Of a stretch of 64,000 nucleotides of DNA, positions 846 to 60,388 are shown one piece after another. Location of the stretch: positions 1,860,072-1,924,071 of the forward strand of contig NC_134034.1 of NCBI RefSeq assembly GCF_964204645.1. The letters are read 5' to 3'. Both the position numbers and the translations under genes were made by a program. The DNA is from Tubulanus polymorphus (taxonomy: Eukaryota > Animalia > Nemertea). A model generated the notes under the pieces. That model was given only the letters and a program-made list of their open reading frames with translations. It did not search any database and was not told the origin of the DNA. Every line of letters begins with the position of its first letter. The stretch's first letter is position 1.

Positions 846-3800
846 ATGAACATCGTTTTGCTGGTTTGCCTGATGATCCAGGTTTCCTTGGCCTTCAATT
901 TTCCAGGTATGAAAAACAATCGAAGCGTGGTAACATCCTAATCCTCTAAGCGAGGTTGAAATGAACAATATTGATGATATCATTATTTTTTGTTGTTAAG
1001 CGCTATCTTCTATTATCCTATCATATCAGTTTTCATAACGCTATTTTAGGTACCGCAAATAAGATAAAACCCCACTATTTACAAATTAAAAAGAAATCTA
1101 AAAGCACACCTAAATCTAAGGCACACTTGACGATGATCTCTAGGGTGAGATCGAAACGTCGCGTTCGTATATTTTAGATTGTTTCAATAAATAAATTTCT
1201 CGATTTTAGATTTCTTTTAATTTGTAAATGGTGGGTTTTTATCTTATCATCTGTTCACCCGACGTTTGAGTGTGGTTATCGTACTAGGTACCGCTATCTT
1301 AGGCCTTGTGTAGATTATCAATCCAAGACGTATTCGTATTGACAGGACTCTACACAGATCGGTTTAATCATACGTTTCCCAAAATCTCGTTAAATTTCCA
1401 GAGCAATAAAGATAATGATGATAATATCTTATAAGAGTAATTTTTAGTGTCTGGAAACAAATAAACCTGCGTATATGCTTACAGGGATGCCTCGTCAGGT
1501 GCAAAATATTATTGGAGGGACATCACCCCGAGGACAAGACGCCAATGAAGGAGGTTTTGACGTGTCCGGAATGTTGGGCCGACTGAAGAAAGATATCCCT
1601 CAACTAACGCCGGGCTATAAACAGCCTCAAAAAGGTACCCAACAGCAACAAGGTATCCAACAACAAGGTATCAGACAGCAACAAGACGGTATCCAACGAC
1701 AAAGTATCCAACGGCAACCACAAGGTATCCAACAACAGGGTTTCCCGCAGCAGCAAGGTTTCCAGCAACAGCAAAAAGGTTTCCAATCGCAGACGAGACC
1801 TATTCGGCAAAGGCGCCGAAGACGACCGCGTCCCCGATTGCAACCTCAATCCAATATCATCAAACAAAGACCCGTTCTACGGCCTCAATCTAAGCCAGTT
1901 CAATCTGAAGCTCGACCTGTCAAACAGGCAGAAATAGAGCCTGTTCAGTTTCAACCCGCACAAAAGGCTCAAGAAAAACCAGCCACACAACCTCAACAAA
2001 GCACTCAGTCACAGGCGAATGTACAACAATCTGCACCAAGACAACCAAAGGCAAGAGATTCATACGTGCATGTAGTCGAACAGCCTGCCCGACAAGCAAA
2101 TCAGAAAGAACCAGTAGTGAATCCATCTGTGGGCCCGAAAAACAACATAGGAGCACCACCTCCGCAAACAAGTATTTTCAGCCCTCCACAAGCTCAGCAG
2201 AGTAAACCCGTGCCGCAAAATAACATCGGCGCACCTCCACAAGCAAGTATATTCAGTCCCCCGACACCGGCAACAAATAAACCCCTTATACAGCAACAAA
2301 TGAACTCCTTACCACAAAATAATATGGGAGCACCTCCACCGCCACAGATGAGTATGCTGAACTTACAGCAACAACAAAATCCGCAACAAATGAATCCTCT
2401 CCAACAGAATAACATGGGTGCTCTCCCGCGACCACAGATGGGTATGGGTAACCAACAGTTTCAACAAAATCCTCAACTAATGCACCCTCCCCAACAGAAT
2501 GGTATGGGCACACCCCAACAACCACAGATGGGTATGCAAAACCCACATCAACAGATGCACCTACCACTGCAACAAATGCGACTACCACAAAATAACATGG
2601 GCGTTCCCCCACCACCACAGATGGGTATGGCTAACCTACAGTCACAAGAAAATCCTCAACAAATTCATCGTCTTCCAAATAACAAAGGTGCATTCCGGCC
2701 GCCATCGATGGGAATGCAAAATCCAAAGCAACACATGAACCATCGACAACAAATCAACATGGGTGTACCCCTGCCACCACACATGGGAATGCAAAATCCA
2801 CAGCAACAAATAAACTCCTTACCACAAAGCAATATGGGCGTACCCCGGCCACCACACATGGGAATGCAAAATCCACAGCAACAAATGAACTCCTTACCAG
2901 AAAGCAATATGGGTGTACCCCGGCCACCAATGATGGGAATGCAAAGTCCACAGCAACAAATGCACCATATACCACAAAACAACATGGGTGTACCCCGGCC
3001 ACCACAGATGGGTTTGTTGAACCCGCAGCTTCAAAAAAATCCTCAAGCTCAACCTCCTCAGCAAATGCATATGCAACATCCTCAATCAGGTCCGATGATT
3101 CAAAATTCACCATCGCCAGCCTCTAACCCGGGACAACAATCTGTCGTGATGGGTAAGCATTTCCAACAACCAGGATCACCAGCGCAACCCGGACAACCAA
3201 CTCAAACGGCTTTCCCATATTTCCCGTTCAATTTCCCACCGGCGAAAGCCAGATACCCTTACAACATGGTACCGTGTACACCGGACATGCATCAATGCGA
3301 GTTCTCGCTCATCCTGCAGCACTACCTTACAATGGTAAGCGTTAACAACGAACAGGTCTCCATCGATAACAGTGGAGCTATTGTCGATCCGACGAATCTC
3401 GCGAATACCATTGAAGAACAGGACAAGATCGTCATAGCTGACGGGTTACAACCGCCTAAACTAGTTATAGCCGTAAACAATTCAATACCGGGTCCAGCTC
3501 TACACGTCTACACAGGTCAGGATATCATCGTACACGTAACAAACCTACTGCTATCCGAGTCTGCGAGTGTACACTTCCACGGGCAAGATGTAGCCGGTTC
3601 CCCTTGGACGGATGGTACGCCCTATATCACCCAATGCCCGATTGGGCCCGGGCAAACATTCACGTACCGGTTCCAAGCCGGGATACCGGGCACGTCGTTT
3701 TACCAGTCGATGTTGGGTATGCAACAACAAGCGGGGGTTTACGGGGCCTTTATTGTCCATGCTCGCGACCAGCCGCATGACCCGCTACACGATAAGGAGC

Positions 3801-5655
3801 TAGTGCTGTCAAACTGGAATGATAGAGAGACACCTGTTGAGCTGTTTATGAAGGATGACTGGGATCAGATGCAAGGTTCCCCACTTTTTTCTGGTATTCT
3901 AATGAATGGGAGAAAAAGCGCGGTTGGTCCAGCTATTTTCGACTTCAAAAGCGGTGAATCCTATCGCTTCCGATTAATCGGCGCTCAAACTAAAAACCCG
4001 ATCACTGTACGATTCCATGAGCACTCGTTTACAGTTGTGGCGCTAGATGGCGTTGATATAGAGCCGGTTGAAGGTCACATTATTACCATATGGCCGGGTG
4101 AGAGAACCGACGTCATAGTTAAAGCCGACCAATCACCGACATTTGATTATAAGATAATTGCTAAGTATCCGGGTGGGAATTACCAAGGTTTTGCTTTGAT
4201 ACGGTACGATGGTACAAGCGGAACTGTTAGTACAAACCCTGCCGGATGCACGGCCGCTACTCCTTGTGTCATCATCAATTGCCTCAGCCCGAAAGATGTC
4301 GCCGATTCTCCCATATTCAAATGCGTTTCGCTAAACGATATGAAATCGAAAGGCGTACCGGCGCCGAACCTTTACTGGAAATCCGGCCCGATATTCCTAA
4401 ATTTCGTCGTCGCTTCGTTAGCACAACCAGAAAACGTGGTCAACGCTCGCAGATTCATAAACCCGACTACAAACACCCTGGTGGCGTCCGGTGGAACGAC
4501 ACCGTGCGATCCGCGTAAGTGCATCGACGGCCAGGTTTGTAAATGTACGGCTCAATTCAACGTGATGAAGAAGTCAGTGACGCAATACGTGTTCGCTAAT
4601 ATGGGCTCTAACACGCAGATGAGAGCCATTCATATGCACGGAAACCACTTCCACGTGTTGAAAGTGCAATACGACCCAACACACGGCGAAATCGTCTGCA
4701 GCAACGACCAAATAACCGAGTTATCGCTTTGCAGACGTCTGAAATGGGCAGACGACAAGTGGAACTACAACTGGCACCTGATCCCGAATCTGAACATCAT
4801 GAACCCCATAGTTAAAGATACTGTATACATCCCCCCGAATGGATACGTGGTAGCTCGTGTGTTCAACTATAATCCGGGAGCCTGGGCCATACATTCTACC
4901 GACGTGAACGAGTTTATATCGGGAATGTCTATCGTCAGTCGAGTCGGAGAGCCGGGTCGAGATTACAGGACGCCTGTAGATTTACCGATCTGTTCGAATT
5001 ACGACGCCGACATACAAAGAAGTAAGTGACTTAAATTTATGTCCATAACTCTTTTTGAATCGTCATTCATCTTATCATTATTAACAATAATGTTTTCGTT
5101 CGCAGTTTTCAGTATTCCAGATGTTATCAGGGATAGAACAGGGTAAGATATTTGTCTTAGTTCGAACCGAGAGTCCTGAGCATTCCTAAGTACTGGGGCC
5201 GCGCTCCTCAGACCCACGATACCATTTCCGCCGTTCTTCCAATTTCCGATCGTCGACATGTGACACGTATTCAGGATTTACCTATTACTTGATTGCTAAA
5301 GAGCTACAAACACCAATTATTTGACATCCAAAAACTGATCGTTTACATGTTTTCAGTACCTCACCTGAGCAGGATTATGTTGATCCTTAAAGAATGGTTC
5401 TGACAGTAACTTTTCTGTTAGCTCGTGGTGGTACAATAACCACTGACAATACACAATTGGTATTCTGTAACTAAAAGGATAATAGGTCTTGGCATTGATA
5501 TGGAAAGTTTCGTCTGTCAGCTCTTAGCCATTTAAAAGTCCAGGGACAAAATTTCAATGAATTCTTCCTTATTTTACTTTTTTTAAATGCCTTTTTCTGC
5601 TCTGCTCACTTTCAGACAAACTCACAGCGCTGCCGCATCCGTTCCTGGAGTCTGA
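846..5655 (+). CDS. Secreted Gln/Pro/Met-rich low-complexity protein fused to a degenerate laccase-like (three-cupredoxin) multicopper oxidase domain, ~1224 aa
   Basis: Exons 846-906 (signal peptide MNIVLLVCLMIQVSLA|FNFPG, phase-1 GT at 907), 1485-5021 (in frame with ORF 1475..5029), and probably 5106-5142 and 5616-5655 (A|GTAAGT donor at 5022, GG|GTAAGA at 5143, all in phase; AATAAA at 5710). An unspliced form would stop at 5029. MCO hallmarks: NNSIPGPAL, SVHFHG, DGTPYITQCPIGPGQTFTYRF, YRFRLI, IHMHGNHFHVL, KDTVYIPPNGYVVARVFNYNPGAW. Confidence 0.85.
2140..3060 (+). repeat. Coding tandem repeat, ~75 nt (25 aa; NMGVPRPPHMGMQNPQQQMNSLPQS-type)
   Basis: AATATGGG recurs at 2831 and 2906 (75 nt apart); about 10 degenerate copies in the translation. 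Confidence 0.85.
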
Positions 5656-7378
5656 ACAGATCACCACTAACCATATTATCTATTCTGAGCTATGTATTTA
5701 TTATCTAAGAATAAATTGGTCTTGGAAAATGACACTCATGAGTTTTAGATTTGCTTTTTTTCCTTATAGATGGAATGAGAAACCGAAAAGTTGGTTAAAG
5801 TTAGATAATATACACACAATTTAAACAATATGTTTGTTATGGCATGCGTTATACAGATGGTAATTTACTTCAACCAACTTTTGAACAACTGGTCCCAGGA
5901 TGATGGAGAGTTAAGAACTAATCGAAGGATGTGGTCTCTATGTCTTTTCATAGATATGGGGATGGTGAATCAACCTTCAGCAAACTGATTCAGCTTATAG
6001 CCTGGCTAGGTATTGATAGCTGGAGATTGGGATGCAGTGGCTTCAATTCGTTCATCCCTGGTCGGCGATTCCTAAGACCCAGATCCATGACTTCATTGAG
6101 AGTTAATCTGCCCCAAGTGACAGATTCATTAGAGTTAGACTCGTTTAGTTTCTGCGTCCATTATTTCACGAAACGGAAATATGTTCCTATAGTTACATTG
6201 GATTGGTACATGTAACACCTAGACAAACGTTGATGAACGAATGACTTGCCCTAGTCAGGGCCTAAAACTGCCCCAAATGAAAGATTTCCTCCTTTTCGAC
6301 ATGGTTTATATACATCCACGATTTAACGAAACGGAACTTTCCTTGCCTCTCATATTCCACGTAAATGACTTCATCGAATGTAAATCTTTTAAAAGAAAAG
6401 TTTGTTCCATTTCCACGAAATCAAATCTCTCGAGCCCCGAGTTTGTGAATTTCACACCTAGACGAATATAGACAAATGAGTGACTCCCTTGAAAATCTGC
6501 CCATTCCACGAAAAAGAAATTTCTCTAGCCTAAAAAAGGATTGGTAATGAAATAACAAATGTAGACAAAATTATACTTCCTTGTAAATCTGCCCTAAGAA
6601 AGAAACAGATTTGCTTTTCACGAAAAAGAAATTTCTCCACAGACTAGCCGCGCAGGATTAGTGAATTTAAACGTAGGGAAATAAAATCTTGCCCCCGATA
6701 AAACACAAAACCATATGCCTTGATTCAAATCTATATGTACACGTAATCTTCTACTAAGAACGATATATCTATTCATTTGGAACGAGTTGAAAAAGCGTAC
6801 CGTCTGTTGACTGAGAAATAATCGTCCATCATTGCTGAAGGTTTTGACGGTAAGATATTGTAGGAAATGGACACAGGTGTGTGGTTCAGGGGTATGATTT
6901 ATCGCGGGGTCCAGGTGTTCACAGCGATATACCTATGTTCATTGCTAGGTGTCCACCACATAGTCTCTACATAGACGCGCGAGATTTAGGTAAGATTATC
7001 TTCGTTTTCTCAGATCAAGAACATTAACAGCATCTGATGTCAAGGTAATTTGCGTATTGATAATTTGACTGTGAAACTAACTCAGGCCTACGTACAATCT
7101 GAAATTGGGGTTTTATAGACTGGGTATAGTTTAGTTATCCCTAGGGATTCTTGCCCTGGGCCCGGTTTCATAAGACCGGGTATAAAAGTTATCACTAGGG
7201 ATAAATCCTCGACAATGGACCCGGTTCTATAGTGTGGGTGATAGATAACCCAAATAGTGAAAACTAAAAAACCAGATGAAATCAATTTCATTCTATATGC
7301 AAATACAATGAAGTTGAAAACCTAGATACAAATATATCATATACCACAGAATAAGGGATACCCATCAACCGCTATATT

Positions 7379-7450
7379 TGGGCTGTAGCTCAGTAGTAGA
7401 GCGCTCGCTTCGCATGCGAGAGGCCCCGGGTTCAAATCCCGGCAGCTCCA
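7379..7450 (+). tRNA. tRNA-Ala(CGC), variant or possible pseudogene
   Basis: Anticodon stem CTCGC/GCGAG with loop TTCGCAT (CGC), G3:U70 alanine identity pair, intact B box GGTTCAAATCC, discriminator A, TTTT at 7454-7457. Position 1 is T opposite C72 and the D-loop GG is AG. Confidence 0.8.
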
Positions 7451-7479
7451 GTCTTTTGAAAATCATATTCTATTCTAGT

Positions 7480-9269
7480 ATGGCGTTGTTGAATTTGGTA
7501 ACGTTAGTGTGTGTTGTGGCGGGTGTACGGGCCTTCAATGTTCCAGGTAAAATAATCATTTTTTGAATGAAAGCATTTCATTTACTCGATTCCGGGGGGA
7601 TCATGCTGTTCATGAGTACTTCACTTTTTCAGGTTTGCCTCCTCAGCTGGGACAACTGATGGGCGGTGGCGGTGGCGGAGGTGGCTCACCATTTGGAGGA
7701 GGAAGTCCATTTGGAGGTGGTTCCCCATTTGGAGGAGGTGGTAAGAAGAATAGTATTTCGATTCTCTAAGAATTTGGTCTAAGAATGTTGACAAAGTTCT
7801 AAATTTCTGTTGATCAGTTCGAAAATTGTCTGTGTTTAATTTGACTCTGGATACAGTTCCACAGTTATGTGGATAATTAGACTGTGAATCCAGCTCCACA
7901 GTTGTGTGGATTCAATTTAGATCCAATTCCACATGTGTGCGTTGGTTTACCCAGATCCACACAGAATTTCCCAAATAATCTCTGACCAAACGTAACTCTT
8001 GAGTTCCATAAAGCCTAATTCTTGTTGGTTTAAATAGTCAAATACAACTTGCAGCCTTGGTAAATGATCATTGAGCGTGTTCATTTTCGACAAAGTATCC
8101 AGATCCAAAATATCGTGGGAGGACAGCTGTTCTGCATAAAAAAGGCAGCGTCCAATATTTCTCACCTTAGAAAAGTTCCTTCTATGCCCCATTTGTATTC
8201 AATAGAATCTCATCGCATCATGAAGTCCTTTATCGTAAGAATATTTGTTTCTTTCATTTTAGGAATGTCTCGAGTATCGCAATTCATGGCTCCTCCAGGA
8301 GGACAACAACAACAGGGAGGTTCAGCCGGTTAGTATCCTAATCACATCAGTCGATTTATAGCTAGGGATTGTAACATATACAAGGTGCGGTTTATTGCGG
8401 TTACAGGTGGTTTGCCGCCCTCCGTTCAGAAATTCATGCAACCGAAAAACACCAAGAAGGTGGATATGGGATCTATGGCATTCGACCCCGCTGACTTTGC
8501 CGATATCAAGGAAAGCATGAGGAAAATGAAGGAAGAAGACGATAAGAAAAGGGCGAGAGAAAAGGCTGCTAAAAATGGTCAGGCCACTGGACAAGGACAA
8601 GGACAAGCTGCCGGACAAGTGCAAGGACAAGCCGTTAGACAGGGGCAGGCCCAAAATGCTGGACAAGGGCAAGGGCAAATATCGCAAAAGTGGAATACCG
8701 GTAACGGTCAGAATCAACAAAACCAAGTTGCCCAAAATAACCGGGCACAGCAGGCGCAAGGAAGAAATGTGAATATCAACCAACAACAGATGCAGAATGC
8801 TTACCAGATGCAACCCCAGTTCCAACAGCAACAACAACAGATGCAGAATGCTAACCAGATGCATCCCCAGTTCCAACAGCAACATCAACAGATGCAGAAT
8901 GCTAACCAGATGCAACCCCAGTTCATGCAGCACGGACAGCAGATGCAACCACAGAATTATGGCCAAAACAACCAGATGCAAATTCGACAAAATTATCAAC
9001 AGGCCGCAATGCAAGCCCAGCAACCTCAGCAAACTTATTTCCAAAACGTTCAGCAACCACAACAGAACTATCATCCTCAACAAGCGTTATACCAACAGAC
9101 GCAATATCAGCAGCCTCAACAGAACTTCTACCAAAGCTATCAGACGCAACAACCACAGCAAAACTATTTCCAAAACAACCCGGGACATTACGTTCAGCAA
9201 CCGCAGCAGCACCAACACTGGCAAACTCCACAAGGATTTGGTCACCACGGAGGCTACATGCAGGGATAG
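7480..9269 (+). CDS. Secreted Gly/Gln/Tyr-rich low-complexity protein, isoform A (~367 aa)
   Basis: Exons 7480-7546 (signal MALLNLVTLVCVVAGVRA|FNVPG), 7633-7740 (GGGSPF repeats), 8263-8328, 8407-9269; all introns GT-AG and phase 1; AATAAA at 9309. Confidence 0.75.
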
Positions 9270-10974
9270 ACACCGATTGCCCGGCCATCCTCTATTACTG
9301 GAATATTGAATAAATTTGATTTCTGTGAACTCTAAGATGCTAGTTTCCTACCGATATCATTTATATTTAGATACGTTTTGTTTACTTCACGCTCTCTCTC
9401 TCTCTCTCTTTCTCTTTCTGTCCGTCTTAGATTTAGGCAGATTTCTAACTCTATTGTAGGGAGGCTTCTTCACAAACTTGGAACGAGATGAATTGAATAT
9501 TACGTTTTGTACGATTTCTTTTTGTGCAGGTCAAGGCCAGAACATGATGACTATGGGTTTAAATCCGAATCAACATCAAACTCCAGCACATGCCGGTCAT
9601 GGCCACGGTCATATGGGTGGGCACGGACATGCTAGTATGTTGGGCCACGGGCGCGGAGGGGTCGCCAGTGGACAACCACAGACGGCTGGATTTGGGCAGC
9701 CTCAAATGCAAGGTAGGTTCGGTCAGCCTCGTATGCAAGGACAGTTTGGTCAGCCACACATGCAAGGGCATGGATTTGGCCAGCCACAAATGCAGGGGCA
9801 TGTATTTGGCCAGCCACAAAATCAAGCTGTTAGATTCGGTCAGCCACAACCACAAGAAGTTAGATTTAACCAACCACAGATGCAAGGGCGTGGATTTGGT
9901 CAGCAACAAAGGCAGGCAGGTGGGTTTGGCCAGCCAAAGATGCAAGCAGGTGGGTTTGGCCAGCCTCAGCCTCAGATGCAAGCTGCTCGATTCAGCCAGC
10001 CACAAGCTCAACGTGAGGGTGGGTTTGGCCAGCTACAAAGGCAGGCAGGTGGGTTTGGCCAGCCACAGATGCAAGCAGGTGGGTTTGGCCAGCCACAAAG
10101 GCAGGCAGGAGGAATTGGCCAGCAACAAAGGCAGGCAGGTGGGTTTGGACAGCCACAGATGCAAGCAGGTGGGGTTGGCCAGCCACAAAGGCAGGCGGGT
10201 GGAATTGGCCAGCCACAAAGGCAGGCAGGTGGAATTGGCCAGCCACAAAGGCAGGCAGGTGGCTTTGGTCAGCCACAAATGCAAGCAGGTCAGCCACAAA
10301 CCCAACAAGGGGTTGGTTTTAACCAAGGATTCCAGCAGCAGCAGCAGCAGCAGCAGCAACAGGGAGGATTTAGACCTCCTGGGATGCCGACAAATGGAGG
10401 ACTACCGAAAGATGTTCAAGAAATTCTCAACATGAAACAATCAGAAACGAAAGAGTTTGATCTGGATGAAATGTTGAAAGAGATCGGTCAAGTTCGTGCT
10501 CAGATACCCAGTCTTAATCAGGACAAAGAAAAACAGCAAGGAGGTCCCCAACAACAGGGTCAACCGCCTAATCAAGGACAAGGGGGTCCTCCACAGCAGG
10601 GCCAACGGCCTAACCAAGGCCGTCCTCCCCAGCAGCAATTCAACCAAGGTCAACCTCCCCAACAGCAATTCAACCAAGGTCAACCTCCCCAACAGCAATT
10701 CAACCAAGGTCAACCTCCCCAACAGCAATTCAACCAAGGTCAACCTCCCCAGCAGCAATTCAACCAAGGCCAACCTCCCCAGCAGCAAAACCAGAACCAA
10801 CAGCCTCACCAGGGTCAGCCACAACCTCCTCAGCAGCAGATTAATCACGGCAAAGCAGCACAGCAGTCCATCCAGGGCCAGGTACCACAGGAGTCCAATA
10901 AAGACCAAAAGGCGCAGCAGTCCATGCAGGACCAAACGGCTAAATCAACAAACTTCGGAACATGGAGAAAATAG
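7480..10974 (+). CDS. Same gene, candidate isoform B with terminal exon 9530-10974 (His/Gly segment, GFGQPQMQ repeats, QGQPPQQQFN repeats; ~561 aa)
   Basis: Strong phase-1 acceptor TTTCTTTTTGTGCAG|GT at 9529/9530 opens the 9478..10974 ORF, which has no signal peptide of its own; AATAAA at 11031 and 11202. Confidence 0.6.
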
Positions 10975-13137: not shown

Positions 13138-29977
<16,840 letters not shown>

Positions 29978-32229
29978 CACGCTTTTAGATACTGAAATTG
30001 AAGACACGAAAAAAAAAATGTTTCGATTCAAAGATAGAAAAACCAATCTTTTTACTTTCCAAGTTTAATGCTTTCCCCTCCAATTCCAAGTTTAGTTCAT
30101 GGGAGCAAATGCAGTCTAGGTGCCGCTCTCTTCTTGATTTGGAGTCAGGGATAGGAGACAGTAGAGTCGGAGCAGGCCAGAGAGGGGCGGAGTTGCAACA
30201 GACAGCAGCCCTTCTCTCCTCTATTAGTTTTAGTCTTCTCCTCTGACAGATGAGACAGCAGAGAGAGGAGCCAATTCGAGTTCAGGGACAGGGTTAAGAA
30301 AAGCGGAGCCTAAATATTTAGAAATCTGTGACTGATGTTGGTGATACATGAACAGTGGTTGACTGGATTTCGTTAAGTCATCAGATCAGTATCTCCTTCC
30401 TCAAAATCCGTGTTCCAAAAAAGGACTTTGAATCTACTTTTTTCATGTGGAACTTAGTTTATAACACGTCTCAGATTTCAGTCGATTTAGACTATTATTA
30501 AACGATGCACTTTATCATATCTACCTTCACTGAATGCTTACTGCAGAATCCTCCTCACGGGACCTTTTTAATTACGATGACCCGGCATATAACAATAAAA
30601 AATTATTTTTATTTCCTGCTCCGCCCGACCTTCACGGTTGAATAAAATTCCGAATTGAATTGATTACGACGATACGGATTACTGGACCGGACGTATTCAA
30701 TTCAATTTTACGTTATTGATAATTTTTTCTGACATGCGGTACGGGTGTGAAAATCAGAATTGTCCAATTGCGTCGGAGAATCGAAATTTTAAAAAAATAA
30801 AGTTTCAAAGATTTAATTATTTCTTCATTTTTATTTCGACGTTGCAGATACAAATGCTGGGTGATAATATAGAAAAAAACATAATCCCATTGGCTTTAGA
30901 AAACAAAAGCCCGCCAAGCAAAATCAAACTCCTTAAAGATAACAGACAAATCTATTACAGTATAAACTTTGCCTTACACACACGTATCCAACTCGGACAA
31001 AAACGAAATCCTCTTTCTGAATTCCTAATCCATTTTCCTATCCTTGACTTGGTGATAAAAAAAATGTGGACAAATTTTACCGGTTGCGCAAGTTTGTCTG
31101 AGTAAGGTGAGAGTTTAACTGTGAAAAAAAGTTTCAATTCAACACTTGGTATTACAGCCTGATTCAGATTGTCTTTAATAATCAAAATAATGAGATAATC
31201 CTTTTTCACCTATTTAAACGATCCTATATCATTGCAATATCATGGTCCAGACTAGTTAGTTACCTAATCGTTGGTGGTAAGCTTTTTATAATCGGATGGG
31301 CTTATGTGAAAATATCCGATCGTGAAACTAAACCACAGTTAGGTTACTGACTAGGTCCAGACTTGATACCGCAGGAGGGTCCAATTCAGGAAGGGGTACG
31401 AGCATTTCAAATTAGGGCGAAGGTCACCTTGAAAGAGAGCTTAACTCATTTTTGGAAAACAGAGAGCAAGCTTATAAAATTAAAGTGTTTTATCTACAAT
31501 ATTTTCATTTTTCCGTGGAATTGCAGGACTTGAATTTTCAGGGGGTGGGACACACTTTCCCCTTGGGACAGTCCACCTGCCTGCGCAGTAATCACGAATT
31601 TTGTGCAAAAAAAAGAACAGAGATCAACATAAAATACCTTAAGCCGAACGACTTGACTGAATTCACTAGGCGTCCACAACTAATTCTAATAATACATTAA
31701 ATATCACAGGTAATGGGTCAATCATCAATAACATTGACACAAAATCATTAAAAAACAAAATAAATAATTACACGGCTTGAGAAACTCTAACAGGACTGGC
31801 CTTCAGCTTATTCAATAATAAAAACCAACAAATTCTAAGCTGCTTTTTCTGGAAAATATACCCCGAATCACATCATTATTCAAATTGGGATCCAGTCTCA
31901 TGAAGAATCAACTGAAACCGCCTTCAACCGATGACAAATAATATGATTACAAATTTAATTGTCACGGACAATTCTTAATTCCACAAATCCCATCAAACCA
32001 ACATTGTCGTCATAGGTATAAAAGTGGTAATTTTTAATGAAGTCATTGGGGGATTTATCGAGACAACCAGTCCATCTTTCTGTAAAGGTGCCTATGTATG
32101 ATGTCATAGGGGGATTCATTGAGTCACCCATTTTTCTGAAAATCAGTACCATTTTTTGGTTTGTTTATGAGTCTACACACTAACGTACGATGTCATAGGG
32201 GGATCAACGAAGGCAGCCATGATAGAAGA

Positions 32230-35200
32230 TTACGAATGATGATGATGATGATGAGGATGAGATTCGCTAGGAACTTCATCGACGACCTTGACCTCGTCGC
32301 TGTTGTCTGCCTCCGATTCCGTCTGCTCCTGTTCCGATTGTTGTAATTTCCACATCGAATGATAGACGTCTTTACGCTCCAACAAATCTTCGTGTCTGAA
32401 TAGAGAAAATAAAAAACCCGATATTCGAAGTCGATTCTATTTCGACGTCGGTGCTGCCCCCTGGTGGCTGTAGGTCAAAATACCCCATCAAGAATCCCCC
32501 AGGAAAATTCGTGAAAAACTCACCCAGGAAAACTCCCCCCACAGAAGAATGTTCCAAATTTCCAATCAATTTTCAAAGGATTGTTTACATATCATCCTGT
32601 CAAGTGTAATTCACAGGGTTTCATCCCTTCATGGTCTCATGTTGAAAAGGGAAAAGATCAGCCAGTTTTGAAATTCTAACAATAGGCCTATGTTTCCTGT
32701 GTTTCCATGGCTAGGCACCATGATAGGGATAATTACCTGCAGGATTTCTACTTTGGGGGTTTGACATTCGTGGAATCTTTCTGAGAGATTTTTAGATTGG
32801 TTATCAAAATCTACCGATGGCGGTAATAAATACTAACCGGCCGCGTTCGACGATGGCGCCCTCTTTCAGTACGAGTATCTGATTGGCGTGCACGATCGTC
32901 GACAGTCGATGAGCGACGATGATCGTCGTGCGGTTCTCGCAGATTTTCGCCAGCGACGCCTGAATGTTACGTTCGGTCTGCGTGTCGAGAGCAGACGTCG
33001 CCTCGTCGAGTAGAATGATCGCCGGCGATTTCAGGATCGTCCGCGCGATCGCCACGCGCTGTTTCTCGCCGCCGCTCAATTTCAACCCTCTCTCTCCGAC
33101 CACCGTGTCGTATCCTGCGTTAGAGAGAGAAAATAACAAATAACAGATAACGCCCCCTATTAGCGATACAAACAACTTATACTACGGAAATGTTTACAGG
33201 GCTGCCAACCTTTTTGAAAAGTGCGATCGGTAACAATTGAATTTTTTTCAGTAACATTTCATTGAAACATGAGGAAAGTAACAAATACTGAAAATCAGGA
33301 GCATTTGGCAGCTCTGAACTTAAGACCAGTCTAAGATCATCTTAATTCTGGGATCATTCATTTATTACCTACGCATTAGGGGAGGGGTCAGTGTAATTGC
33401 GTACTGTAATGCTTACTGAATATGAAAAAATGGCCGATTTTGCGTACAGAGGGGGGTTGAAAAAGTCAAATTTCATGCGTACGTAATAAATGAATGATCC
33501 CTCTATAACTAATCTAACAACTTAAGACCAGTTTAAGCTGATTTTGGTTCCGTAACCAATCTAACATTTTACATTGTGGCCCCTACAGCCTATCTGAATG
33601 GACTGTCAAGCCGCCTGTGATGAGTGATAAAAGGGACCTCTGCAGTTGATAAGAAGAACTAACAACAAATTCTCTGCTCCAAGATGAACTTATAACCATT
33701 ACTACGCCCTCCGCAGTTGACAATATGAACTAATTAAAAACTTACTATCGGGGAATGCTAATATTTTCTGATGAATATCCGCGGCCTCGGCCGAACTCTC
33801 GACCTCGTCGTCGCCGGCGCCGACGCGTCCATAGCGTATGTTATAACGGATATTATCATTGAACAGTACGGTATCCTGCGGCACGACGCCGATACTCTGT
33901 CTCAACGAGTGTTGCGTAACCTAGCAGATAAAACAAAACTAACAGTACGAATTTATATCGGGGAGTATCCTCGCTTGCCAGGGTTCGATCGCCCCCCCCC
34001 CCCGCGAAAGCTCACAAATATCAACGGGCATTGTTACGCGTAACTAACCTTCGATATATTTTGCCCGTCGAATAAAATGGCGCCCGATTTTATATCGTAG
34101 AATCTGAACAGCAGACGGATGATGGTCGATTTGCCGGCGCCGGACGGACCGACGAGAGCGTACGTCTGCCCGGGCGGAACCGTGAACGATATATCCTTCA
34201 ATATCGGTTTACTGTAAAAAATTACACAACCATCGTGATTAAAACATCGACCCGATTTTGGGTAACAACCCGATTTTACTTTGACCCTCACTACAGGGTG
34301 TCTTCTCATTAAATCATATTCTGTTAAAATCCAATGTAATAGTGCGTATTATTCGGAAATTAACTTAGAAATCAATGTTGACCCAATATTGGGCAACAAT
34401 CCGATTTTACTTCGACCCTCACCTCGGGTTGTAATGGAAGTTGACGTTTTTGAATTGGATTTGACCTTCGGTTATGGTTAGAGGTCGCGCGTCATCATCG
34501 TCGACTATTTCCTGTTTCTCTTTCATCAAATCGAACATGTTCTCCATATCGATAAACGATTGTTGTAAAACTCTGCAAAAAAAAACCGAAAAATTTCATA
34601 ATGTCTTCATATCGGCCATCTTGAATTGATAAAGAGTTACTGCAGGCATCACCAGATGGCGTGACTAACAGTCAGTATATGACGGTGAAAAATTACAAAT
34701 GTGAATGAATCACATTTAAACTAGCAACACCTGGTGGATCCTCACTTGCTATAGGAGGAATCTCTATTGCCGCAGTAGTTGATGTCCTACTGCACACCAA
34801 TGACACCTGGTGGATCCTCACTTGCAATAGGAGGAATCTCTATTGCTGCAGTAGTTGATGTCCTACTGCACACTAACGACACCTGGCGATCCACACTTGC
34901 CACAAGATAAATAATCTTCTATTGCCGCATTAGTTCATTCTTCACACTAGTGACACCTGGTGGATTATCTAGCACACTCTATTTTCACAGTTACGTAGCT
35001 AGGCGACAACCCGATTAATTATACAACAATTCTTACCGATAGAATGTTCCGAAGAAGTTAAGCGGTCCGTAAAGCTGCACGACGTACGTAGCGAACAACA
35101 CGAAATCTCCAACAGTAAAACGATCGCCGTCGACGATATACGACGCCATTAACAACGAACCGGCTAAAAATCCACACGTTATAATCACATTCTGTAGAGT

Positions 35201-38200
35201 ATTTAACAGATTCAACGATGCGGTCGTGATCCATTCAGCTTCCTAGAGAAGAAGAAATCGTTTTTAGAATATTTTTGAAATCGAAATCAGGCCTCGGTGT
35301 CAGGCCTATCTCCTGTGTACGAGACTTCGGACTGGACCTCCAGTCAATGAGACCACACTCCAGATCTTACCCATCCTCTGACTCCATCCACTCTATGAGA
35401 CTTGACCTCCAGTCTTTGAGACCTCCTATCTATGAGACTGGTACTTCATTGTGATACCAGTCCTACAATTTGTAAGACCAGACCTCCAGTCTATGTGACT
35501 GACCCTCAAGTCTATGAGGCTGACCCTCCAGTCTATGAGGCTGACCCTCAAGTCTATGAGGCTGACCCTCCAGTCTATGAGGCTGACCCTCCAGTCTATG
35601 AGGCTGACCCTCCAGTCTATGAGGCTGACCCTCCAGTCTATGAGGCTGACCCTCCAGTCTATGTGACTGACCCTCAAGTCTATGAGACCATACTTCAGCC
35701 TATGAGACCAGACTCCAATGTATGACGCTGGACCTCCCATCTTTAAGACCAGACCTCAAGTCTATGAGACCGGCTCACGAGACTCACCTGATATTTAGCG
35801 ATTGATTCCGCGTAACGATTCACTTCAAACTTTTCGGCCCCGTAATATTTCACGGTTTCGAAGTTGATCAATGAATCGACACCGCGAGCGTTCCGTTCGT
35901 TGTCCAATTTATTCATCGTACGACGGTACTTTGTCCTCCACTCGGTCACCGCGATCGTTGCCACTGGAAACCGATGCAACAATCGAAAACCGTTAAGCAA
36001 TCAGAGATCCAACAACAAAATCGGACAAGAAAATATCAATCTTTCTAACCGTATGGGTCTAAAATCAGGGTACTGTGTATACCTCAGACAAACTAGACCG
36101 ATTAATTTTTCTCTGAGATTTTAGAGCAATAAGATGAATGGTTATCACGAGTAAGAAAATTTGTTATGTATCTTAAGGTGGGGGCACCCTGTCAGGGGTA
36201 AGTGTAGTTAGTTACCTAAACGTTGGTGGTAAGCTTTTATAATCGTATGGGCTTATGTGGGCGTTAATATTTCACCATGTTTGACAGGTGATGCCATCTT
36301 ATATTAGTGATAAGAACTAATTACCGGGTACTAATAACATCAATTCACAGTGATATCACCGATTTATACACCGCACTTGTAGACGCACTGAAAGGCTTCG
36401 ATGAATTAGAATTGAAAGATTTACAACTTACGAAGATAGAGGAACATCGTGAGGAATACAATCAGACCGAACCAGCCGTTGAACGTCGTTATGAAATACA
36501 CGATAGCGATTATGATATCTACGATCGTCGGGCCGATATTAAACACCATCGTACTGAAAATAATACAGAGAAATACAGAAAAACTACCCTCAACGAAACA
36601 CGCTCCTAAATCGCTCCTTTGTGGAGCAGGGGCAGATCCAGGGGCTGGTTGCGTAGTCATGGCTTAGACTTGAGACCAGTCTAAGACCAACATAGTTCTA
36701 TAGCCAATCTAACAACTGAAGACCAGTCTTTAGTTTTGAGACCACTTTTGAACTTAAGTCACGACTGTGCAACTGGCCCCAGGGGACTTTTGAGACTTGA
36801 ACGAGCCCATCAAATATGTTTTGAGCGCCCCGTTTAATTTTGTTAACAAACAAAAAAAAAAAATTGGCGCATTTCAGAGCGGATGTACGCTTAACCTCTT
36901 CACTACCGCAGATAATGTAACCTATCTCACCAGGATTCGAACCCAATGGCATCAATCAATTCAAATAAAATCGGTATTAGAGGCTGTTAGCATTACTAAT
37001 CCTCCACCTATGAGTAAAAATTGGAACTAAGTTGAGGCAGACAAGTCTATAGTACGGCTACACACCAGCAGTGCAATGGCTCACCACACCAGCAATTGTA
37101 GTAAATGGCGACGTAAATATACGTCGCGCATGGTGAGAGAAGAGGTTAATATTCAATACGAAAAGATAGGCCTATTAGCAGACGACCGCCCTAATTCTAC
37201 CCTCGATGAAGACTTACTTGAGAACTTGATTGATGCTGCTCGTGCCGCGGTCCATAACACGCAAAACTTCACCGGTTTTCCGGCTCAGATGCCAACTCAA
37301 CGACAATCTAAACGCACGAAAAAACATTCCACGCGTTGAAACAATCGAAGCATTTGATCGTAAAATAATAAAAATTGCTTAGGGTATAAACACGCGTCGA
37401 ACCCTACCCGTGTAGATGGTCGAATAACTTCGTTTCGATCCCCTTCGTCGTGTATTGTTGAACGCGTATCCATAGAAACGTGCGCAGATTATTCAACAGA
37501 CCCATCGAACCTGAAACAGATCGCGGCGATATCTTGAAATTTCAAACGTCGATTATTTCTATCAAAGAATTTAGAATTTGAGCATTTTCTAAATTGGGCC
37601 ATTTAAAATTTTTCAATATCAAGATTTGAAAATTTCCTATTTTGAAATTTCAAAGCGATTGGACTTACCAAATCCTCCACCTTGTAGGAACCTCAACGCG
37701 ACGTAGATGAGAACTAGATCCCAGCGGAACAGTAATGTCTGCTTCGGTTTAGGCGTCAAACTATCAACTGTGAAATCAATCAAATTCATCGATCAATCAA
37801 TCAAAAGAAACTCATGAATCAAATCACTCAAACTCAGAAATCAAACTCATAATTAAAATCACTCGAACTTATAAATCAAATTGATCGCACAAAAAGGCCT
37901 AAATGAATCAAATTTCTAGGAAATTGAATCGAGAAATTGAATCTTGCCGATTTGTTTGTAGTAGATGGGTACGAGTAGATTGACGCCGCGTCCGGCTATC
38001 AGAACTATCAAACAGAATATCACTCGAAGCTGAAGTAAAATGCTTCCCTTCGGCCAAATGAAAGGAAATATCATTTTGAATTTCGAGATTATTCCCGCCC
38101 ATGTTGACTGCCTTTGCTGTTCCTCGGCTTCGTTCAACAAAGCCTGAAATAAACAAACGAATCAAACAGAATTCAATGAGTTCTGTAACTGATGTCTGCC

Positions 38201-40834
38201 TCCATAAATCCCCCTATGACATCATCAAATTGTCTACAAGTGATTTGCTTTATGGATACTTCTAGAAAAGATGTCTGCCTCCATAAATCCCCCTATGACA
38301 AGTGATTTGATCTATAGAGACTTCTAAAGAAGATGGCGGCCTGCATAGATCTCCCTAACACATCATCAAATTCTCGCAAAGCGATTCGATCTAGAGATAC
38401 TTCCAGAATAAATTGATGCCACCATCAATCCCCCTATGACATCATTCGATGCTATCAGTTAGATGGATCAATTCACTTGTCGCTTTTGATGATGTCATCA
38501 TACACAAGGGGCTTGTATTAGAAGTTTGGGGTGAATGGTAGTCAGTAACCTGACTGTGGTTTAGTTTCACGATCGGATATTTTCACGGAATAGTAGCTTA
38601 GATCATCCAATATCCCTGTGATGTCATGGGGGGATTTATAAAGGTAGCCATCTTCTCTGAAAGGGTCTATCAATCAATTTGATGATGTCATAGGGCGATT
38701 TATGGAGGCATATCTTTCCTAAAAGTGTTTATCGATCAAATCACTGGGCAACTCAATGATGTCACCGGGAGATTTATGGAGGCAGACATCTTTTCTAGAA
38801 GTTTCACATGATGATGTCATAGGGGGATTTATGAAGGCAACCATCTTTTCTAGAAGCATCTATCCGATCAAATTACTGGTAATCAATTTGATGATGTCAT
38901 AGGGGGATATATGGAGACAGACATCTTTTTTAGAAGTGTCACATGATGATGTCATAGGGGGATTTATGAAGGCAGCCATCTTTTCTAGAAGCGTCTATAT
39001 CAGATCAAATTACTGGTAATCAATTTGATGATGTCATAGGGGGATTTATGGAGACAGACATCTTTTTTAGAAGTGTCATTTGATGATGTCATAGGGGGAT
39101 TTATGAAGGCAGCCATCTTTTCTAGAAGCGTCTATCAGATCAAATTACTGGTAATCAATTTGATGATGTCATAGGGGGATTTATGGAGGTAGTTATCTAA
39201 ATTGATGGTTCATAGGATTGAAGACAGCGACCTATTATTAGCTTTATTTACCTCTGCTTGTTCCTCATCAGCATTTATAAGCAATCTGAGTTGATGTAAA
39301 GGTAAAGCAGGAGCCTTTATTCCTAACACAAACAAACTGAAAGTGCTGATATAACGCACCAGCCACAACCCGAATTCAATCCTGTGAGATGATCTGAAAT
39401 CGAGAATGAGAAAAAATTTGAATTTACACGTTAAGCTAAGCATACATCGACAAAGCGACCGGAGACAACTAGTTGCTAGTGAGCGAGTACCCCGATCAGA
39501 TCGAAAATTTAATGAAAACCAGCAACTGCGTGGCTCATGCCGGTCGCTAGGTCCGTAGCGCACACATCGACAGCAACTGAGATGTGTTTTAGCAAATATT
39601 CTTGAGGGCATCACAAGTCACGTGACAAATAGCTTTGTTTTAGTAAGTTACAACTATGTGTTGTTGATTATGGAGCGCTCACATCGACGGATATGAGAGC
39701 AACTGAGTACAACTAGTTGCTCAAAAGTAGAACATGAGCAACTGGGTAGAACTGGAGATAGATGGACGCTAACCAATCGTAAGCTCGCTCACATCGACAA
39801 ATTCGAGCAACTGATTGTATCCAGCCAGTTGCTCTCATGCGCCGAAAACTGCCCGGCAACTAGTTGTCTCCAGTTACTTCGCCGATGTACGCTAGGCTTT
39901 AGATTTTATCACAGTCGCTCAGAAGTTGATTTAAGATAACCGGCGGATGAATTACATAGTATTCACAATGGACTCTTAATTGTCACTATGTCAACTATCC
40001 ACTTATTGTTTCTAACCAACTTTTGACCAACTGGACCCCGGCCAGTAACTATTCAGTAACCTGTCTGTGGTTCAGTTTCATGATCGTATATTTTCACAAA
40101 CCACAAGCCCATCCGATTTTAAAAAGCTTACCACCAATGATTAGGTAACTAACTATAACCAGTAACGAGACTGTTTTTAGTCAGTAACTGGACTACGGAA
40201 CTGCAGTTTAGTCAGTGAATGCCTTGATCTAAAGAGCGGCCATATAGAACAATGTTTCCAACAAAATCGGTCAAAATCTCACATAATCCAATATCTCCAT
40301 TTTGATGCGGAATAGGCAGAGCTGAACTTACCCTTTAATATCCCACCACCAGAGGTCGCTGTTCCAGCTGACGAATGCCACATTCTCCGATAAGAACGCC
40401 GCGCCCCAGAAGACGAGTAAAACGAGCCCGTGCCCGCGGGTCGGTATCGTCGGCAACAACCAGCGCCGCTCTTTAAAAACCAAACAAATCGACACGGTCC
40501 AAGCGGCCGTGCGTAAACAAGCGCGCGCGATCTCGAACCCGTAAACAGTTCCGGCGTGGAGTTCAGAGACGTCCATAATCACCCGCACGACGCTCTCGAC
40601 GGCCATCACACCGGCCAGCGCCATCTGCAGGACGAACCATGCGTTCACGCGTAATAAACGTTCGTCGACGCGGTTGCCGTACTTCCGATAGAACCCGAGT
40701 TCGGCGACTCCACACGCGACCACGAACACGAACAGCACGCCCGCCGATATCGTTTCAATAAAACACGGAGCGAATCCTTCGCGCAGCCACGGAGTGGTCA
40801 AATTCGCATCCGTCGGACAGTACAACTTCAACAT
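32230..40834 (-). CDS. ABCB6: ABCB6/HMT-1 half transporter (heavy-metal tolerance / porphyrin family), ~855 aa, 14 coding exons
   Basis: Exons 40834-40332, 39393-39252, 38143-37948 (GC donor), 37767-37669, 37510-37408, 37307-37218, 36553-36432, 35963-35788, 35242-35037, 34572-34423, 34211-34049, 33920-33746, 33114-32838, 32395-32230. TMD0 start YCP...W...[73 protein letters not shown]. Confidence 0.93.
33350..33501. mobile_element. PIF/Harbinger (Tourist)-like MITE nested in a TTAAGACC MITE
   Basis: GGGATCATTCATTTATTAC...GTAATAAATGAATGATCCC with 3-bp TCT duplication; second copy at 42973-43138 with TTA flanks. Confidence 0.7.
34720..34970. repeat. ~77-bp intronic tandem repeat (CACCTGGTGGATCCTCACTTGC...)
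   Basis: 3-4 degenerate copies; related core at about 48225. Confidence 0.7.
35330..35780. repeat. 21-bp minisatellite (CTGACCCTCCAGTCTATGAGG)
   Basis: Produces spurious VYEADPP/LIDWRVS ORFs inside an ABCB6 intron. Confidence 0.9.
38190..39200. repeat. Clustered dispersed repeat GATGATGTCATAGGGGGATTTATGGAGGCAG
   Basis: Copies in both orientations here, and in clusters near 13520, 15940-16230, 18525-18680, 19480-19760, 20275-20640, 32090-32220 and 56920-57350. Confidence 0.85.
39434..39898. mobile_element. Harbinger-like non-autonomous DNA element
   Basis: Imperfect TIRs AGCTAAGCATACATCG...GGAGACAACTAGTTGC / GCAACTAGTTGTCTCC...CGATGTACGCTAGGCT with TTA on both sides. Confidence 0.65.
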
Positions 40835-41228
40835 TTTTCTAAACAAAAAAGGGGCGAGACCAATTTAGTTCCAAGAAACCAGCAAATATCTGACAACGTT
40901 TTCTGGCCTGATTTTAAGATCAAAGTACAATTACAACAGATAAGCTTCTCGGGGCATTAATTGGGTCGCAGATTTTTATTTTTTTACGTAAAGATCAACG
41001 ACCTTCAGTCTGTCGGTGAGTCGGCAAATCTATATTGAATTTGAATAAAGTCTGCTTTGAATTTGAATAAAGCGAATTGGATTTATTACGGTACGGAATT
41101 CGGACCGGACTGAAATAGCGGTCGTTCGGTTGAATCAATCATCAGTCGTTCGCTCAGTTGATCCTGGTAGTAGGCGTCGTCGGTTTCTGTCTGGTGTGTC
41201 ACTTCACAACGAGTTCTAAAAGTCCACG

Positions 41229-53534: not shown

Positions 53535-58168
<4,634 letters not shown>

Positions 58169-59355
58169 AACGAAAACCGAGACACCGTGCCATAGGTACA
58201 CGGAGCAGACGGACTGTTTCAATTAATTAAACGAATAATTAATATCGACGATATCGCCATGTTTAACGATGAAATTAATAAGATTATTTATTACGTTAAT
58301 TTAGAAGTACGATTTTCGTTCGAAAGTCGTCAGGTCGTCGTCATGGCGACGCGCCGTGGTTGTTGTTGTCGCGGCGACAGATCTTATTCGATGTCTGTCG
58401 TGTCTATATCATTTATACATATACAGAAAAATGTTCAAATAAAAGCAATGCAAACAGGAATAATTACGTCGACTTTGTTGTGAATCGGTTTTTGCGGAGA
58501 AAATGGGATTTTTTCTTTATTCCTAAAGGGAAAGCTCAACGACTGGTACACAGTAAATGTAGGAAAAATGCCATCAGTGGAAATGACGGAAAAATGCCGC
58601 AAATGATTGTCTCAACGGTTAGAAATGAAAATGCTACATTTCAAACTTCTGGGGCCGGTTGCATAGTCATGACTTAGACTTAAGACCAGTCTAAGACCAA
58701 CTTAGTTCTACAGCTAATCTAACAACTTAAGACCAGTCTTAAGATTTAAGACCACTTTTGGACTTAAGTCACGACTGTGCAACTGGCCCCTGCCATCTAG
58801 ATTTTATAAACTTTCAAAGTAGAGTAATAACTGGACGTCTGGACACTTTGTAATAGATTAGGTAACGAACCTGTAATAGACCTTGGAGTAGTCGTTTCTC
58901 CAAGGTCGGACACAGTCCCGATGAAATGCGGGGTTGTTACGCACTCTCTCCATAGCGATAGTCGCTCCTAAGAAATACCAACCAAACAACAATCGATGTA
59001 AAAGATATAATAAATTTTTATTGGACACTGCCCACAATATATTTTCACATTTTGACAAGCATACAACATCTGAATACACACGTTATACATATATTCGTCT
59101 ATTTACTTTTCATTTAAAATAAAATATCATTTTATTGTTCACAAAAAACAATTTTTTCAATTCTCAAAATTCTCACAACTTATTCGTATTTGTTTATGAC
59201 GTATTACGACGAGTTCTGGTTTTGAACGATTATCATAATTATAATTATTATTAATTATAGTTCGTGTGCAACGTGTGACGACGTGATAATGAAAAATAAT
59301 CATCGAAAAGTAAAACGTAACGAAGTGATGAAATGCAGCATCCGATCCTACCGCA

Positions 59356-60388
59356 AGCACACGGTATATCTTTAGCTGACTAACGATACCCAGGTGCACA
59401 CAGTATATCAGTAGCTGATTGATGGTAGCCAGGTGCACACGGTATATCAGTAGCTGATCGATGGTAGCCAGGTGCACACGGTATATCAGTAGCTGACTAA
59501 CGATACCCAGGTGCACACGGTATATCAGCAGCTGACTGATGGTAGCCAGGTGCACACGGTATATCAGTAGCTGACTGATGGTAGCCAGGTGCACACGGTA
59601 TATCAGTAGCTGACTAACGATACCCAGGAGCACACGGTATATCAGTAGCTGATTGATGGTAACCAGGTGCACACGGTATATCAGTAGCTGACTGATGGTA
59701 GCCAGGTGCACACGGTATATCAGTAGCTGATTGATGGTAGCCAGGTGCACACGGTATATCAGTAGCTGACTAACGATACCCAGGTGCACACGGTATATCA
59801 GCAGCTGACTGATGGTAGCCAGGTGCACACGGTATATCAGTAGCTGATCGATGGTAGCCAGGTGCACACGGTATATCAGTAGCTGACTAACGATACCCAG
59901 GTGCACACGGTATATCAGCAGCTGACTGATGGTAGCCAGGTGCACACGGTATATCAGTAGCTGACTGATGGTAGCCAGGTGCACACGGTATATCAGTAGC
60001 TGACTAACGATACCCAGGTGCACACGGTATATCAGTAGCTGATTGATGGTAACCAGGTGCACACGGTATATCAGTAGCTGACTGATGGTAGCCAGGTGCA
60101 CACGGTATATCAGTAGCTGATTGATGGTAGCCAGGTGCACACGGTATATCAGTAGCTGACTAACGATACCCAGGTGCACACGGTATATCAGCAGCTGACT
60201 CATGGTAGCCAGGTGCACACGGTATATCAGCAGCTGACTCATGGTAGCCAGGTGCACACGGTATATCACCAGCTGACTCATGGTAGCCAGGTGCACACGG
60301 TATATCACCAGCTGACTCATGGTAGCCAGGTGCACACGGTATATCACCAGCTGACTGATGGTAGCCAGGTGCACACGGTAGCTGACTA
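59356..60388. repeat. 39-bp minisatellite (CAGGTGCACACGGTATATCAGTAGCTGACTGATGGTAGC), ~26 copies
   Basis: The period is a multiple of 3, giving the artefactual 419-aa VHLATISQLLIYR ORF. Confidence 0.95.

Follow-up and report, generated by a model that had tools for sequence, protein, structure and literature searches.

The 64,000-nucleotide (nt) stretch of DNA described here (the window, G000:C10:1860072-1924071) comes from the palaeonemertean Tubulanus polymorphus and carries, close to its start, two adjacent genes on the plus strand, which are called gene 1 and gene 2 below. On balance we favour the view that these genes are paralogous and lineage-restricted and that they code for secreted, basic, disordered Gln/Pro-rich repeat proteins; in gene 1 the repeats are joined to a laccase fold with an incomplete set of copper ligands. 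The gene models consist of exons read from the sequence, and homology searches were run exon by exon rather than with joined (spliced) protein queries. Searches of the animal's own genome covered an assembly of 268 Mb in 77 contigs. The anatomy of the genes is observed directly, and the splicing pattern is predicted from it. The features of both genes, and of a tRNA gene between them, are the following, in positions of the window.

846-5029, plus strand: gene 1 as a whole, comprising a signal exon and one 3.5-kb exon separated by a phase-1 intron
846..906, plus strand: gene 1 exon 1, with start codon and signal peptide, ending in A-F-N-F-P and the first base of a Gly codon (phase 1), as translated from the sequence
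907..1484, plus strand: gene 1 intron 1 (predicted), GT-AG, phase 1, with splice consensus at both ends
1485..1616, plus strand: gene 1 N-terminal module, with the core decapeptide followed by the FD..ML..IPxL half
1617..3211, plus strand: gene 1 disordered region, recognised by composition and tandem repeats
3212..5029, plus strand: gene 1 laccase fold (three cupredoxin domains by Pfam), with ligand motifs at 3569-3589, 3695-3718, 4622-4654 and 4886-4927
7378..7451, plus strand: tRNA-Ala(CGC), found with ARAGORN, with a TTTT run after it and ending 28 nt before the gene 2 start codon
7480-10974, plus strand: gene 2 as a whole, with its own signal exon followed by four phase-1 exons
7480..7546, plus strand: gene 2 exon 1, with ATG at 7480 and a signal peptide ending in A-F-N-V-P and g (phase 1)
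7633..7740, plus strand: gene 2 exon 2, 108 nt, phase 1-1, with the core decapeptide and then a Gly-rich SPFGGG repeat
8263..8328, plus strand: gene 2 exon 3, 66 nt, phase 1-1, predicted from its splice sites, with a looser copy of the core and then Gln/Gly
8407..9269, plus strand: gene 2 terminal exon 4a, with the core decapeptide, a charged stretch and Gln-rich repeats; stop at 9267-9269, AATAAA at 9309
9530..10974, plus strand: gene 2 terminal exon 4b, with a strong consensus acceptor; stop at 10972-10974, AATAAA at 11031
9589-9651, plus strand: Gly/His stretch of exon 4b, read from the sequence
9745-10290, plus strand: about 18 decapeptide repeats of the GGFGQPQ type in exon 4b
10399-10515, plus strand: internal full module of exon 4b
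10612-10788, plus strand: six QPPQQQFNQG repeats in exon 4b

Gene 1 opens with a signal-like peptide of 20 codons from the ATG at 846, with the donor GTATGA at 906/907 and a pyrimidine-rich acceptor at 1484. Exon 2 (1485-5029) holds one frame of 1,181 codons that ends in a TGA stop at 5027-5029. The disordered region encoded in it is 575 amino acids (aa) long, contains 23 % Gln and 17 % Pro, is also rich in Asn, Gly and Met, has an isoelectric point (pI) of 11.9, and includes 2 Tyr and no Cys. It is composed of 15-36-nt Gln-Gly-Ile units and 75-90-nt Gln/Pro/Met units and contains a poly-Arg run at 1805-1837. This run (R-Q-R-R-R-R-R-P-R-P-R), about 107 residues into exon 2, resembles a proprotein-convertase site, cleavage at which would free the N-terminal module together with its Gln-Gly-Ile repeats. 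At the other end of the gene a consensus donor, GTAAGT, overlaps the stop codon (5022-5029) in phase 1, the phase of all gene 2 acceptors, so that read-through splicing from gene 1 to gene 2 exons would keep the frame. The first AATAAA downstream of the gene 1 stop occurs only at 5710.

In gene 2, exon 3 (8263-8328) was absent from a preliminary description of the locus. The features that were placed in that description were confirmed by reading and translation, among them the Q/P/M, Q/Y, G/H and GFGQPQ repeats and, in both genes, plausible signal peptides and intact low-complexity Gln-rich frames. The open frames at exons 4a and 4b extend to 311 and 504 codons, respectively. Exon 4a contains 33 % Gln, with Gln/Asn/Met and Gln/Tyr repeats and 12 Tyr (4 %), and no internal GT[AG]AG donor was found in it; exon 4b contains neither Tyr nor Cys, and no start codon with a signal peptide occurs in the 260 nt upstream of it. 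Both exons have AATAAA 40-60 nt past the stop. In the simplest model, exons 4a and 4b are probably alternative last exons behind one signal exon. When ten regular 30-nt repeat units of exon 4b were compared, 36, 41 and 107 pairwise differences were counted at codon positions 1, 2 and 3, respectively, a third-position bias which demonstrates that the peptide is under constraint and the array coding.

It is very unlikely that part of the locus is non-working, exon 4b (or 4a) being either an unexpressed relic or a single-exon gene that starts at the first internal Met and yields a non-secreted Gln-rich protein. No signal exon lies directly upstream of 9530, as would be expected in that case, and the tRNA gene crowds the promoter of gene 2: with 28 nt between them, the gene 2 promoter for RNA polymerase II would overlap or precede the polymerase III gene, or else the 5' untranslated region would be very short. 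The lengths of the two open frames and the third-position bias among the repeat units argue against a relic, as do the consensus acceptor in the phase of every gene 2 donor and the separate poly(A) signal of each terminal exon.

A signal exon common to both genes had been proposed, and this holds for its end rather than for the exon as such. Each gene possesses a separate signal exon, and the h-regions and most of the remaining length of these exons differ, while the last 20 nt are identical at 19 positions and encode A-F-N-[F/V]-P plus g in phase 1 in both cases. The first 15 nt of the exons that follow are, by reading, also alike. The 18-mer GCCTTCAATNTTCCAGGT occurs exactly twice in the 268 Mb, both times at the gene 1/gene 2 locus, and a genome-wide search with near and degenerate patterns of it revealed no other signal exon of this kind; a one-mismatch match on contig C3 and a degenerate match on contig C7 were rejected, as they are not signal exons. 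The local module family, defined by a signal exon ending in A-F-N-x-P-G, a phase-1 intron and a next exon headed by the core, consists of gene 1 and gene 2 only.

The preliminary description also reported a non-repetitive motif recurring within the low-complexity chains, of which the ten-residue core withstood the controls. When each copy of the core decapeptide was used as a seed against the 73,778 stop-free decamers in the six frames of the window, the best non-self match was in each case another copy. The first ten residues of the five coding exons entered in phase 1 were far more alike than decamers drawn at random from these exons (p=0.009 unshifted, p=5e-5 with a one-residue shift and 0.004 without the Gly forced by the splice). 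A pattern written from the motif copies gave 4 matches compared to 0.03 in shuffles, a circular result, as the pattern was derived from those copies. That the core decapeptide is statistically real and marks the starts of coding exons is well supported. It has the appearance of a head that duplicated module exons have conserved, rather than of a free-standing tag. In intron 2 of gene 2 (7944-7973, plus strand) there is a further decamer, close in sequence to the core motif and the third-best match of the window, in frame-less sequence with no AG acceptor and with a stop after it. It could be what is left of a module exon that has decayed, or it could match by chance.

The motif had been proposed to be an amphipathic helix, and part of the peptide is indeed predicted to be helical. 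AlphaFold single-sequence models gave two short helices for the exon 4b module, which cover the core and the second half, respectively, with predicted local distance difference test (pLDDT) scores up to 92, and for the gene 1 module one helix, in the second half only (1562-1594, pLDDT about 75). Hydrophobic moments peak there at 0.60-0.66. It is plausible that the module is helical and moderately amphipathic.

Searches of public proteins detected no relatives of the module. The genome search with a motif profile, suggested at the outset, recovered only the three long copies from which the profile was built. Against 1.84 billion public representatives, the same profile gave four matches, all of them to unrelated repeat proteins; these were rejected, as Kelch-like and other repeat proteins matching in several short pieces. 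A word search with the exon 4b module, covering proteins of 264-840 aa, found nothing, and a search of the ESM Atlas for the module gave no usable match. The disordered tail of gene 1 matched only itself in the own genome, and a full-length gene 1 query returned one distant laccase and nothing else. Exon 4b reached 23.2 bits on its GGFGQPQ array against PF25296 ('Decapeptide repeat region'), below the curated cut-off of 45, and membership was rejected, since the match reflects periodicity and composition. The own-genome matches to exon 4b were other tandem decapeptide arrays of different sequence (FGGYGAPQLY etc.) and were likewise rejected as compositional; among them is a 300-codon open array of FGGYGAPQLY at G000:C6:908412-909254, picked up by period and composition only.

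The C-terminal part of gene 1 has the complete three-domain multicopper oxidase fold, with PF07732 (E 4.8e-32), PF00394 (1e-19) and PF07731 (1.1e-12) in order and above the curated cut-offs. Among solved structures, ascorbate oxidase 1AOZ and laccases come closest, and the best relatives in public databases are laccases of molluscs, annelids and cnidarians, with 31-35 % identity. The C-terminal 601 aa are best matched by lophotrochozoan laccases with the same Pfam domains (Biomphalaria glabrata LOC106073971, Patella, Owenia; E 2.6e-84, 34 % identity). In contrast to gene 1, the catalytic laccases of lophotrochozoans retain the complete set of four copper motifs and lack a long repeat region.

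Copper ligands were scored by aligning gene 1 with catalytic laccases, which have ten His and one Cys in the motif set HxHG, HxH, HxxHxH and HCHxxxH. Gene 1 keeps 5 of these 11 ligands and does not qualify as a catalytic laccase. The first motif is intact (H-F-H), the second reads Y-Q-S-M, with both His gone, the third keeps two His and has Arg in place of the type-1 His, and the fourth is H-S-T...E instead of H-C-H...H. When ligands are assigned to copper types by the standard scheme from laccase structures, none of the three type-1, both type-2 and three of the six type-3 ligands remain. With all three type-1 and three of the six type-3 ligands gone, the domain is unable to accept electrons from a substrate or to oxidise phenols; the naming of gene 1 as a pseudo-laccase, with a laccase fold and no type-1 copper site, was correct. 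Some copper binding may persist through the type-2 ligands and the remaining type-3 ones.

Other laccase genes of T. polymorphus differ in this respect. Two further paralogues are without the type-1 Cys, LOC141910578, a RefSeq laccase that matches contig C9 exon by exon (97-99 % identity), and a repeat-fronted laccase gene on C9. A copy on C7 has all four copper motifs, and a cluster on C9 (5.69-5.74 Mb) holds four copies with the first three motifs, the fourth motif being outside the aligned pieces of open reading frame. The nearest relatives of gene 1 are lophotrochozoan laccases and the T. polymorphus paralogues, in a tree that was built without MCORP or SKS sequences.

In composition, the Gln-rich parts of both genes contain 23-33 % Gln and 4-8 % Ser+Thr, have a pI of 9.7-11.9 and lack Cys in their disordered parts. 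Tyr amounts to 0 % in exon 4b, 0.3 % in the gene 1 tail and 4 % in exon 4a, and Lys is also scarce. The products are not mucins, as they are poor in Ser and Thr, and no VWD or CK domains of gel-forming mucins were found by Pfam. As they are poor in Tyr and Lys, they would also be poor substrates for tanning. Precursors of quinone-tanned or 3,4-dihydroxyphenylalanine (DOPA)-sclerotised materials are marked by high Tyr or by plentiful His, Lys or Cys nucleophiles, in combination with an active phenoloxidase. The sequences do not have this character, with Tyr scarce, the tails free of Cys and the local oxidase domain dead. The repeats are young at the DNA level and fast-changing, and they place Phe, Met, Arg or Tyr at regular intervals in a Gln/Gly/Pro background.

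The preliminary description linked the locus to sclerotised biomaterials cured by a phenoloxidase. In that explanation the products would be quinone-tanned precursors that work with a partner of phenoloxidase fold, and the motif would act as a tag sorting matrix and oxidase into the same granules. In its favour, a laccase fold is found both beside secreted repetitive proteins and in fusion with them, exon 4b includes the Gly/His stretch (9589-9651), 12 Tyr occur in exon 4a, part of the module is predicted to be helical, and the C7 copy and the C9 cluster at 5.69-5.74 Mb look active. However, the local domain lacks the type-1 Cys, both type-1 His and three type-3 His, Tyr and Cys are absent from exon 4b, only 2 of the 575 aa of the gene 1 tail are Tyr, and no active oxidase was found in the gene cluster or in the 40 kb upstream. 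We therefore consider sclerotisation improbable. The supposed oxidase-fold partner exists as a fold, but it is fused to the module and is no separate protein. No additional Gln-rich gene was found in the 40 kb upstream of the window.

A looser paralogous locus is present on contig C9 (G000:C9:13.953-13.964 Mb), where a repeat-fronted laccase gene without the type-1 Cys has the same layout of signal exon and giant exon. As in gene 1, the signal exon ends in Pro-Gly and is followed, after a phase-1 intron, by a single giant exon, which encodes a Met/Gly-rich head, Gly/Met and Gln/Met/Pro repeats and the laccase fold. The laccase parts share 33 % identity, and the N-terminal peptide is loosely alike and was missed by the profile; the gene order is reversed compared to the window. 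A repeat-only secreted gene (about 13.9556-13.9569 Mb) lies 3.6 kb upstream of the dead C9 laccase. Its signal exon ends in A-F-S-F-M-P with a phase-1 donor, and it encodes a Gly-rich head and Gly/Tyr/Pro/Gln/Met repeats of about 14 aa. In the tree, gene 1 and the C9 laccase group together with 100/99 support. For the kinship of these two genes the shared architecture is a better argument than the tree grouping. A dead laccase fold appears to have been joined to a long disordered repeat protein at least twice in the T. polymorphus genome.

We lean towards a role of both genes in a secreted gel, glue or tube matrix, with the dead laccase as a structural or binding knob. The building block would be a module exon entered via a phase-1 intron, with a conserved, hydrophobic and partly helical head, G-[LM]-P-x-x-[VL]-Q-x-[ILF]-[ILM], and a fast-evolving low-complexity tail. 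Gene 1 would then combine a signal exon, one module and a laccase fold that has lost catalysis, and gene 2 a signal exon, two small modules and one of two alternative terminal modules. Both products, predicted to be secreted, would be exported by gland cells and build up a gel, glue or tube matrix that is cohesive without being a mucin. Weak multivalent contacts would hold it together, i.e. hydrogen bonds of Gln and 'stickers' of Phe, Met, Tyr, Arg and His in 'spacers' of Gly, Gln and Pro. The Gly/His stretch and the His ligands still present make it possible that bridges by transglutaminase or metal contribute as well. The conserved mature N-terminus might serve packaging or assembly, and the dead laccase domain might be a folded binding or structural knob, perhaps holding copper, rather than a curing enzyme, in agreement with the view taken of other dead multicopper oxidases (PMC4203857).

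Several observations weigh against this explanation. The material role is argued from composition only. No promoter words shared by gene 1 and gene 2 rose above shuffles, and the tRNA gene 28 nt 5' of the gene 2 start leaves scant room for a conventional promoter. The motif as a whole, 44 aa, gave no alignment by BLASTP between copies; by Smith-Waterman comparison the best pairs exceeded about 88-95 % of shuffles (p about 0.05-0.12), and exon 4a (8407) against gene 1 gave no signal over shuffles. The FD..ML..IPxL half is convincingly common only to gene 1 and the internal copy of the 9530 exon (4b). The claim of a long recurring motif came close to failing against shuffled controls, whereas that of the core did not. 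The helices were modelled from single sequences with moderate confidence, and in gene 1 the model shows no helix over the core. The grouping of gene 1 with the C9 laccase joins two long branches and dissolves in leave-one-out trees when either is left out.

It is possible, though unlikely, that there is no joint system at all. Their proximity would then simply go back to tandem duplication, the peptide in common would be a remnant of homology retained for signal cleavage or splicing, and the pseudo-laccase would have a separate role in the extracellular matrix or in growth, unconnected with gene 2, like that of insect MCORP or plant SKU5. Plant SKU5/SKS proteins are copper-site-deficient multicopper-oxidase-like proteins. 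The product of gene 1 resembles these and insect MCORP (PMC4203857) in being a three-cupredoxin fold, predicted to be secreted, with most copper ligands lost and an intact frame. MCORP is a dead multicopper oxidase with a non-enzymatic role, and dead multicopper oxidases of this kind act without repeat partners (PMC4203857). Gene 1 differs from MCORP and SKU5 in its 575-aa disordered Gln/Pro-rich front and in grouping among lophotrochozoan laccases, at about 30-35 % identity. A separate role would also be consistent with the block conserved at 19/20 nucleotides, which spans the cleavage site and the splice junction, with the marginal similarity of the whole motif and with the lack of shared promoter words. 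Against it, the pairing of a repeat-only gene and a dead laccase with a repeat front is found again on C9, and the core also heads internal and downstream exons, beyond the cleavage site and that junction.

The products could also serve for binding rather than as building material. Like salivary basic proline-rich proteins, their basic Pro/Gln-rich chains would take up polyphenols, metals or molecules of prey or microbes, and the laccase-shaped domain would be the head that binds phenol or copper. The C-terminal half of exon 4b resembles basic Pro/Gln/Gly-rich proteins in composition and repeats, and the type-2 and some type-3 His are retained beside the Gly/His stretch. This is an analogy to which no homology was found, and we regard it as hardly probable.

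The proposed cohesive matrix has parallels of its own. Gluten, salivary basic proline-rich proteins and FG-repeat gels are cohesive disordered repeat proteins. The likeness to them lies in short tandem repeats of Gln, Pro and Gly, regularly spaced Phe, low charge complexity and Cys-free repeats, and involves no homology; the products of gene 1 and gene 2 differ as animal proteins predicted to be extracellular and to bear signal peptides. Spidroins, the secreted material proteins of spider silk, are paralogues that share a conserved non-repetitive terminal piece, a five-helix domain of 130 aa, while their repetitive cores have diverged completely. The likeness to spidroins is by analogy and without sequence relation, as the shared terminal piece here is 10-40 aa. 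A more elaborate version of the matrix role, which we consider doubtful, makes gene 2 a cassette gene, in which one promoter, signal exon and head with alternative ends would give several chemically different cohesive proteins. The head would be a short domain for storage and assembly, present also in the repeat-fronted dead laccase, and the laccase would be a copper- or phenol-binding cross-link hub, all of them together forming the protein matrix of the worm's tube, glue or mucus.

In the rest of the window, exon-sized open reading frames with an ATP-binding cassette (ABC) transporter signature of the LSGGQ type were recognised by eye on the minus strand at 13141-30100 and 32800-41000, and point to two ABCB-type genes, one for a full transporter and one for a half-transporter. 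On the plus strand at 53627-56733, exon-sized open reading frames resemble, also by eye, a CDK5-type protein kinase. Minisatellite arrays at 14170-15500, 35420-35755 and 59160-60416 are open in several frames, with open reading frames of up to 419 codons; these three arrays are probably non-coding repeats in introns or intergenic DNA.

In the literature, no paper was found on these proteins or on the chemistry of Tubulanus tubes, and none on the structural proteins that nemerteans secrete in mucus, tubes or proboscis glue; the searchable proteomic papers are concerned with toxins. The anatomy described here is real. The sequences form an orphan family, a variant on two themes that are already known, that of the dead multicopper oxidase and that of the modular secreted repeat protein. 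The locus provides concrete and testable candidate genes for the structural proteins of nemertean secretions. In gene 1, a laccase fold has been recruited onto a long disordered repeat protein after catalysis was lost. The two genes together are a clean example of repeat-protein genes that grow by duplication of phase-1 module exons, of which only the ten-residue head is kept. If the products are proven to form a material, the decapeptide repeats of Gln, Pro and Phe, free of Tyr and Cys, would be a new sequence type for cohesive protein gels.

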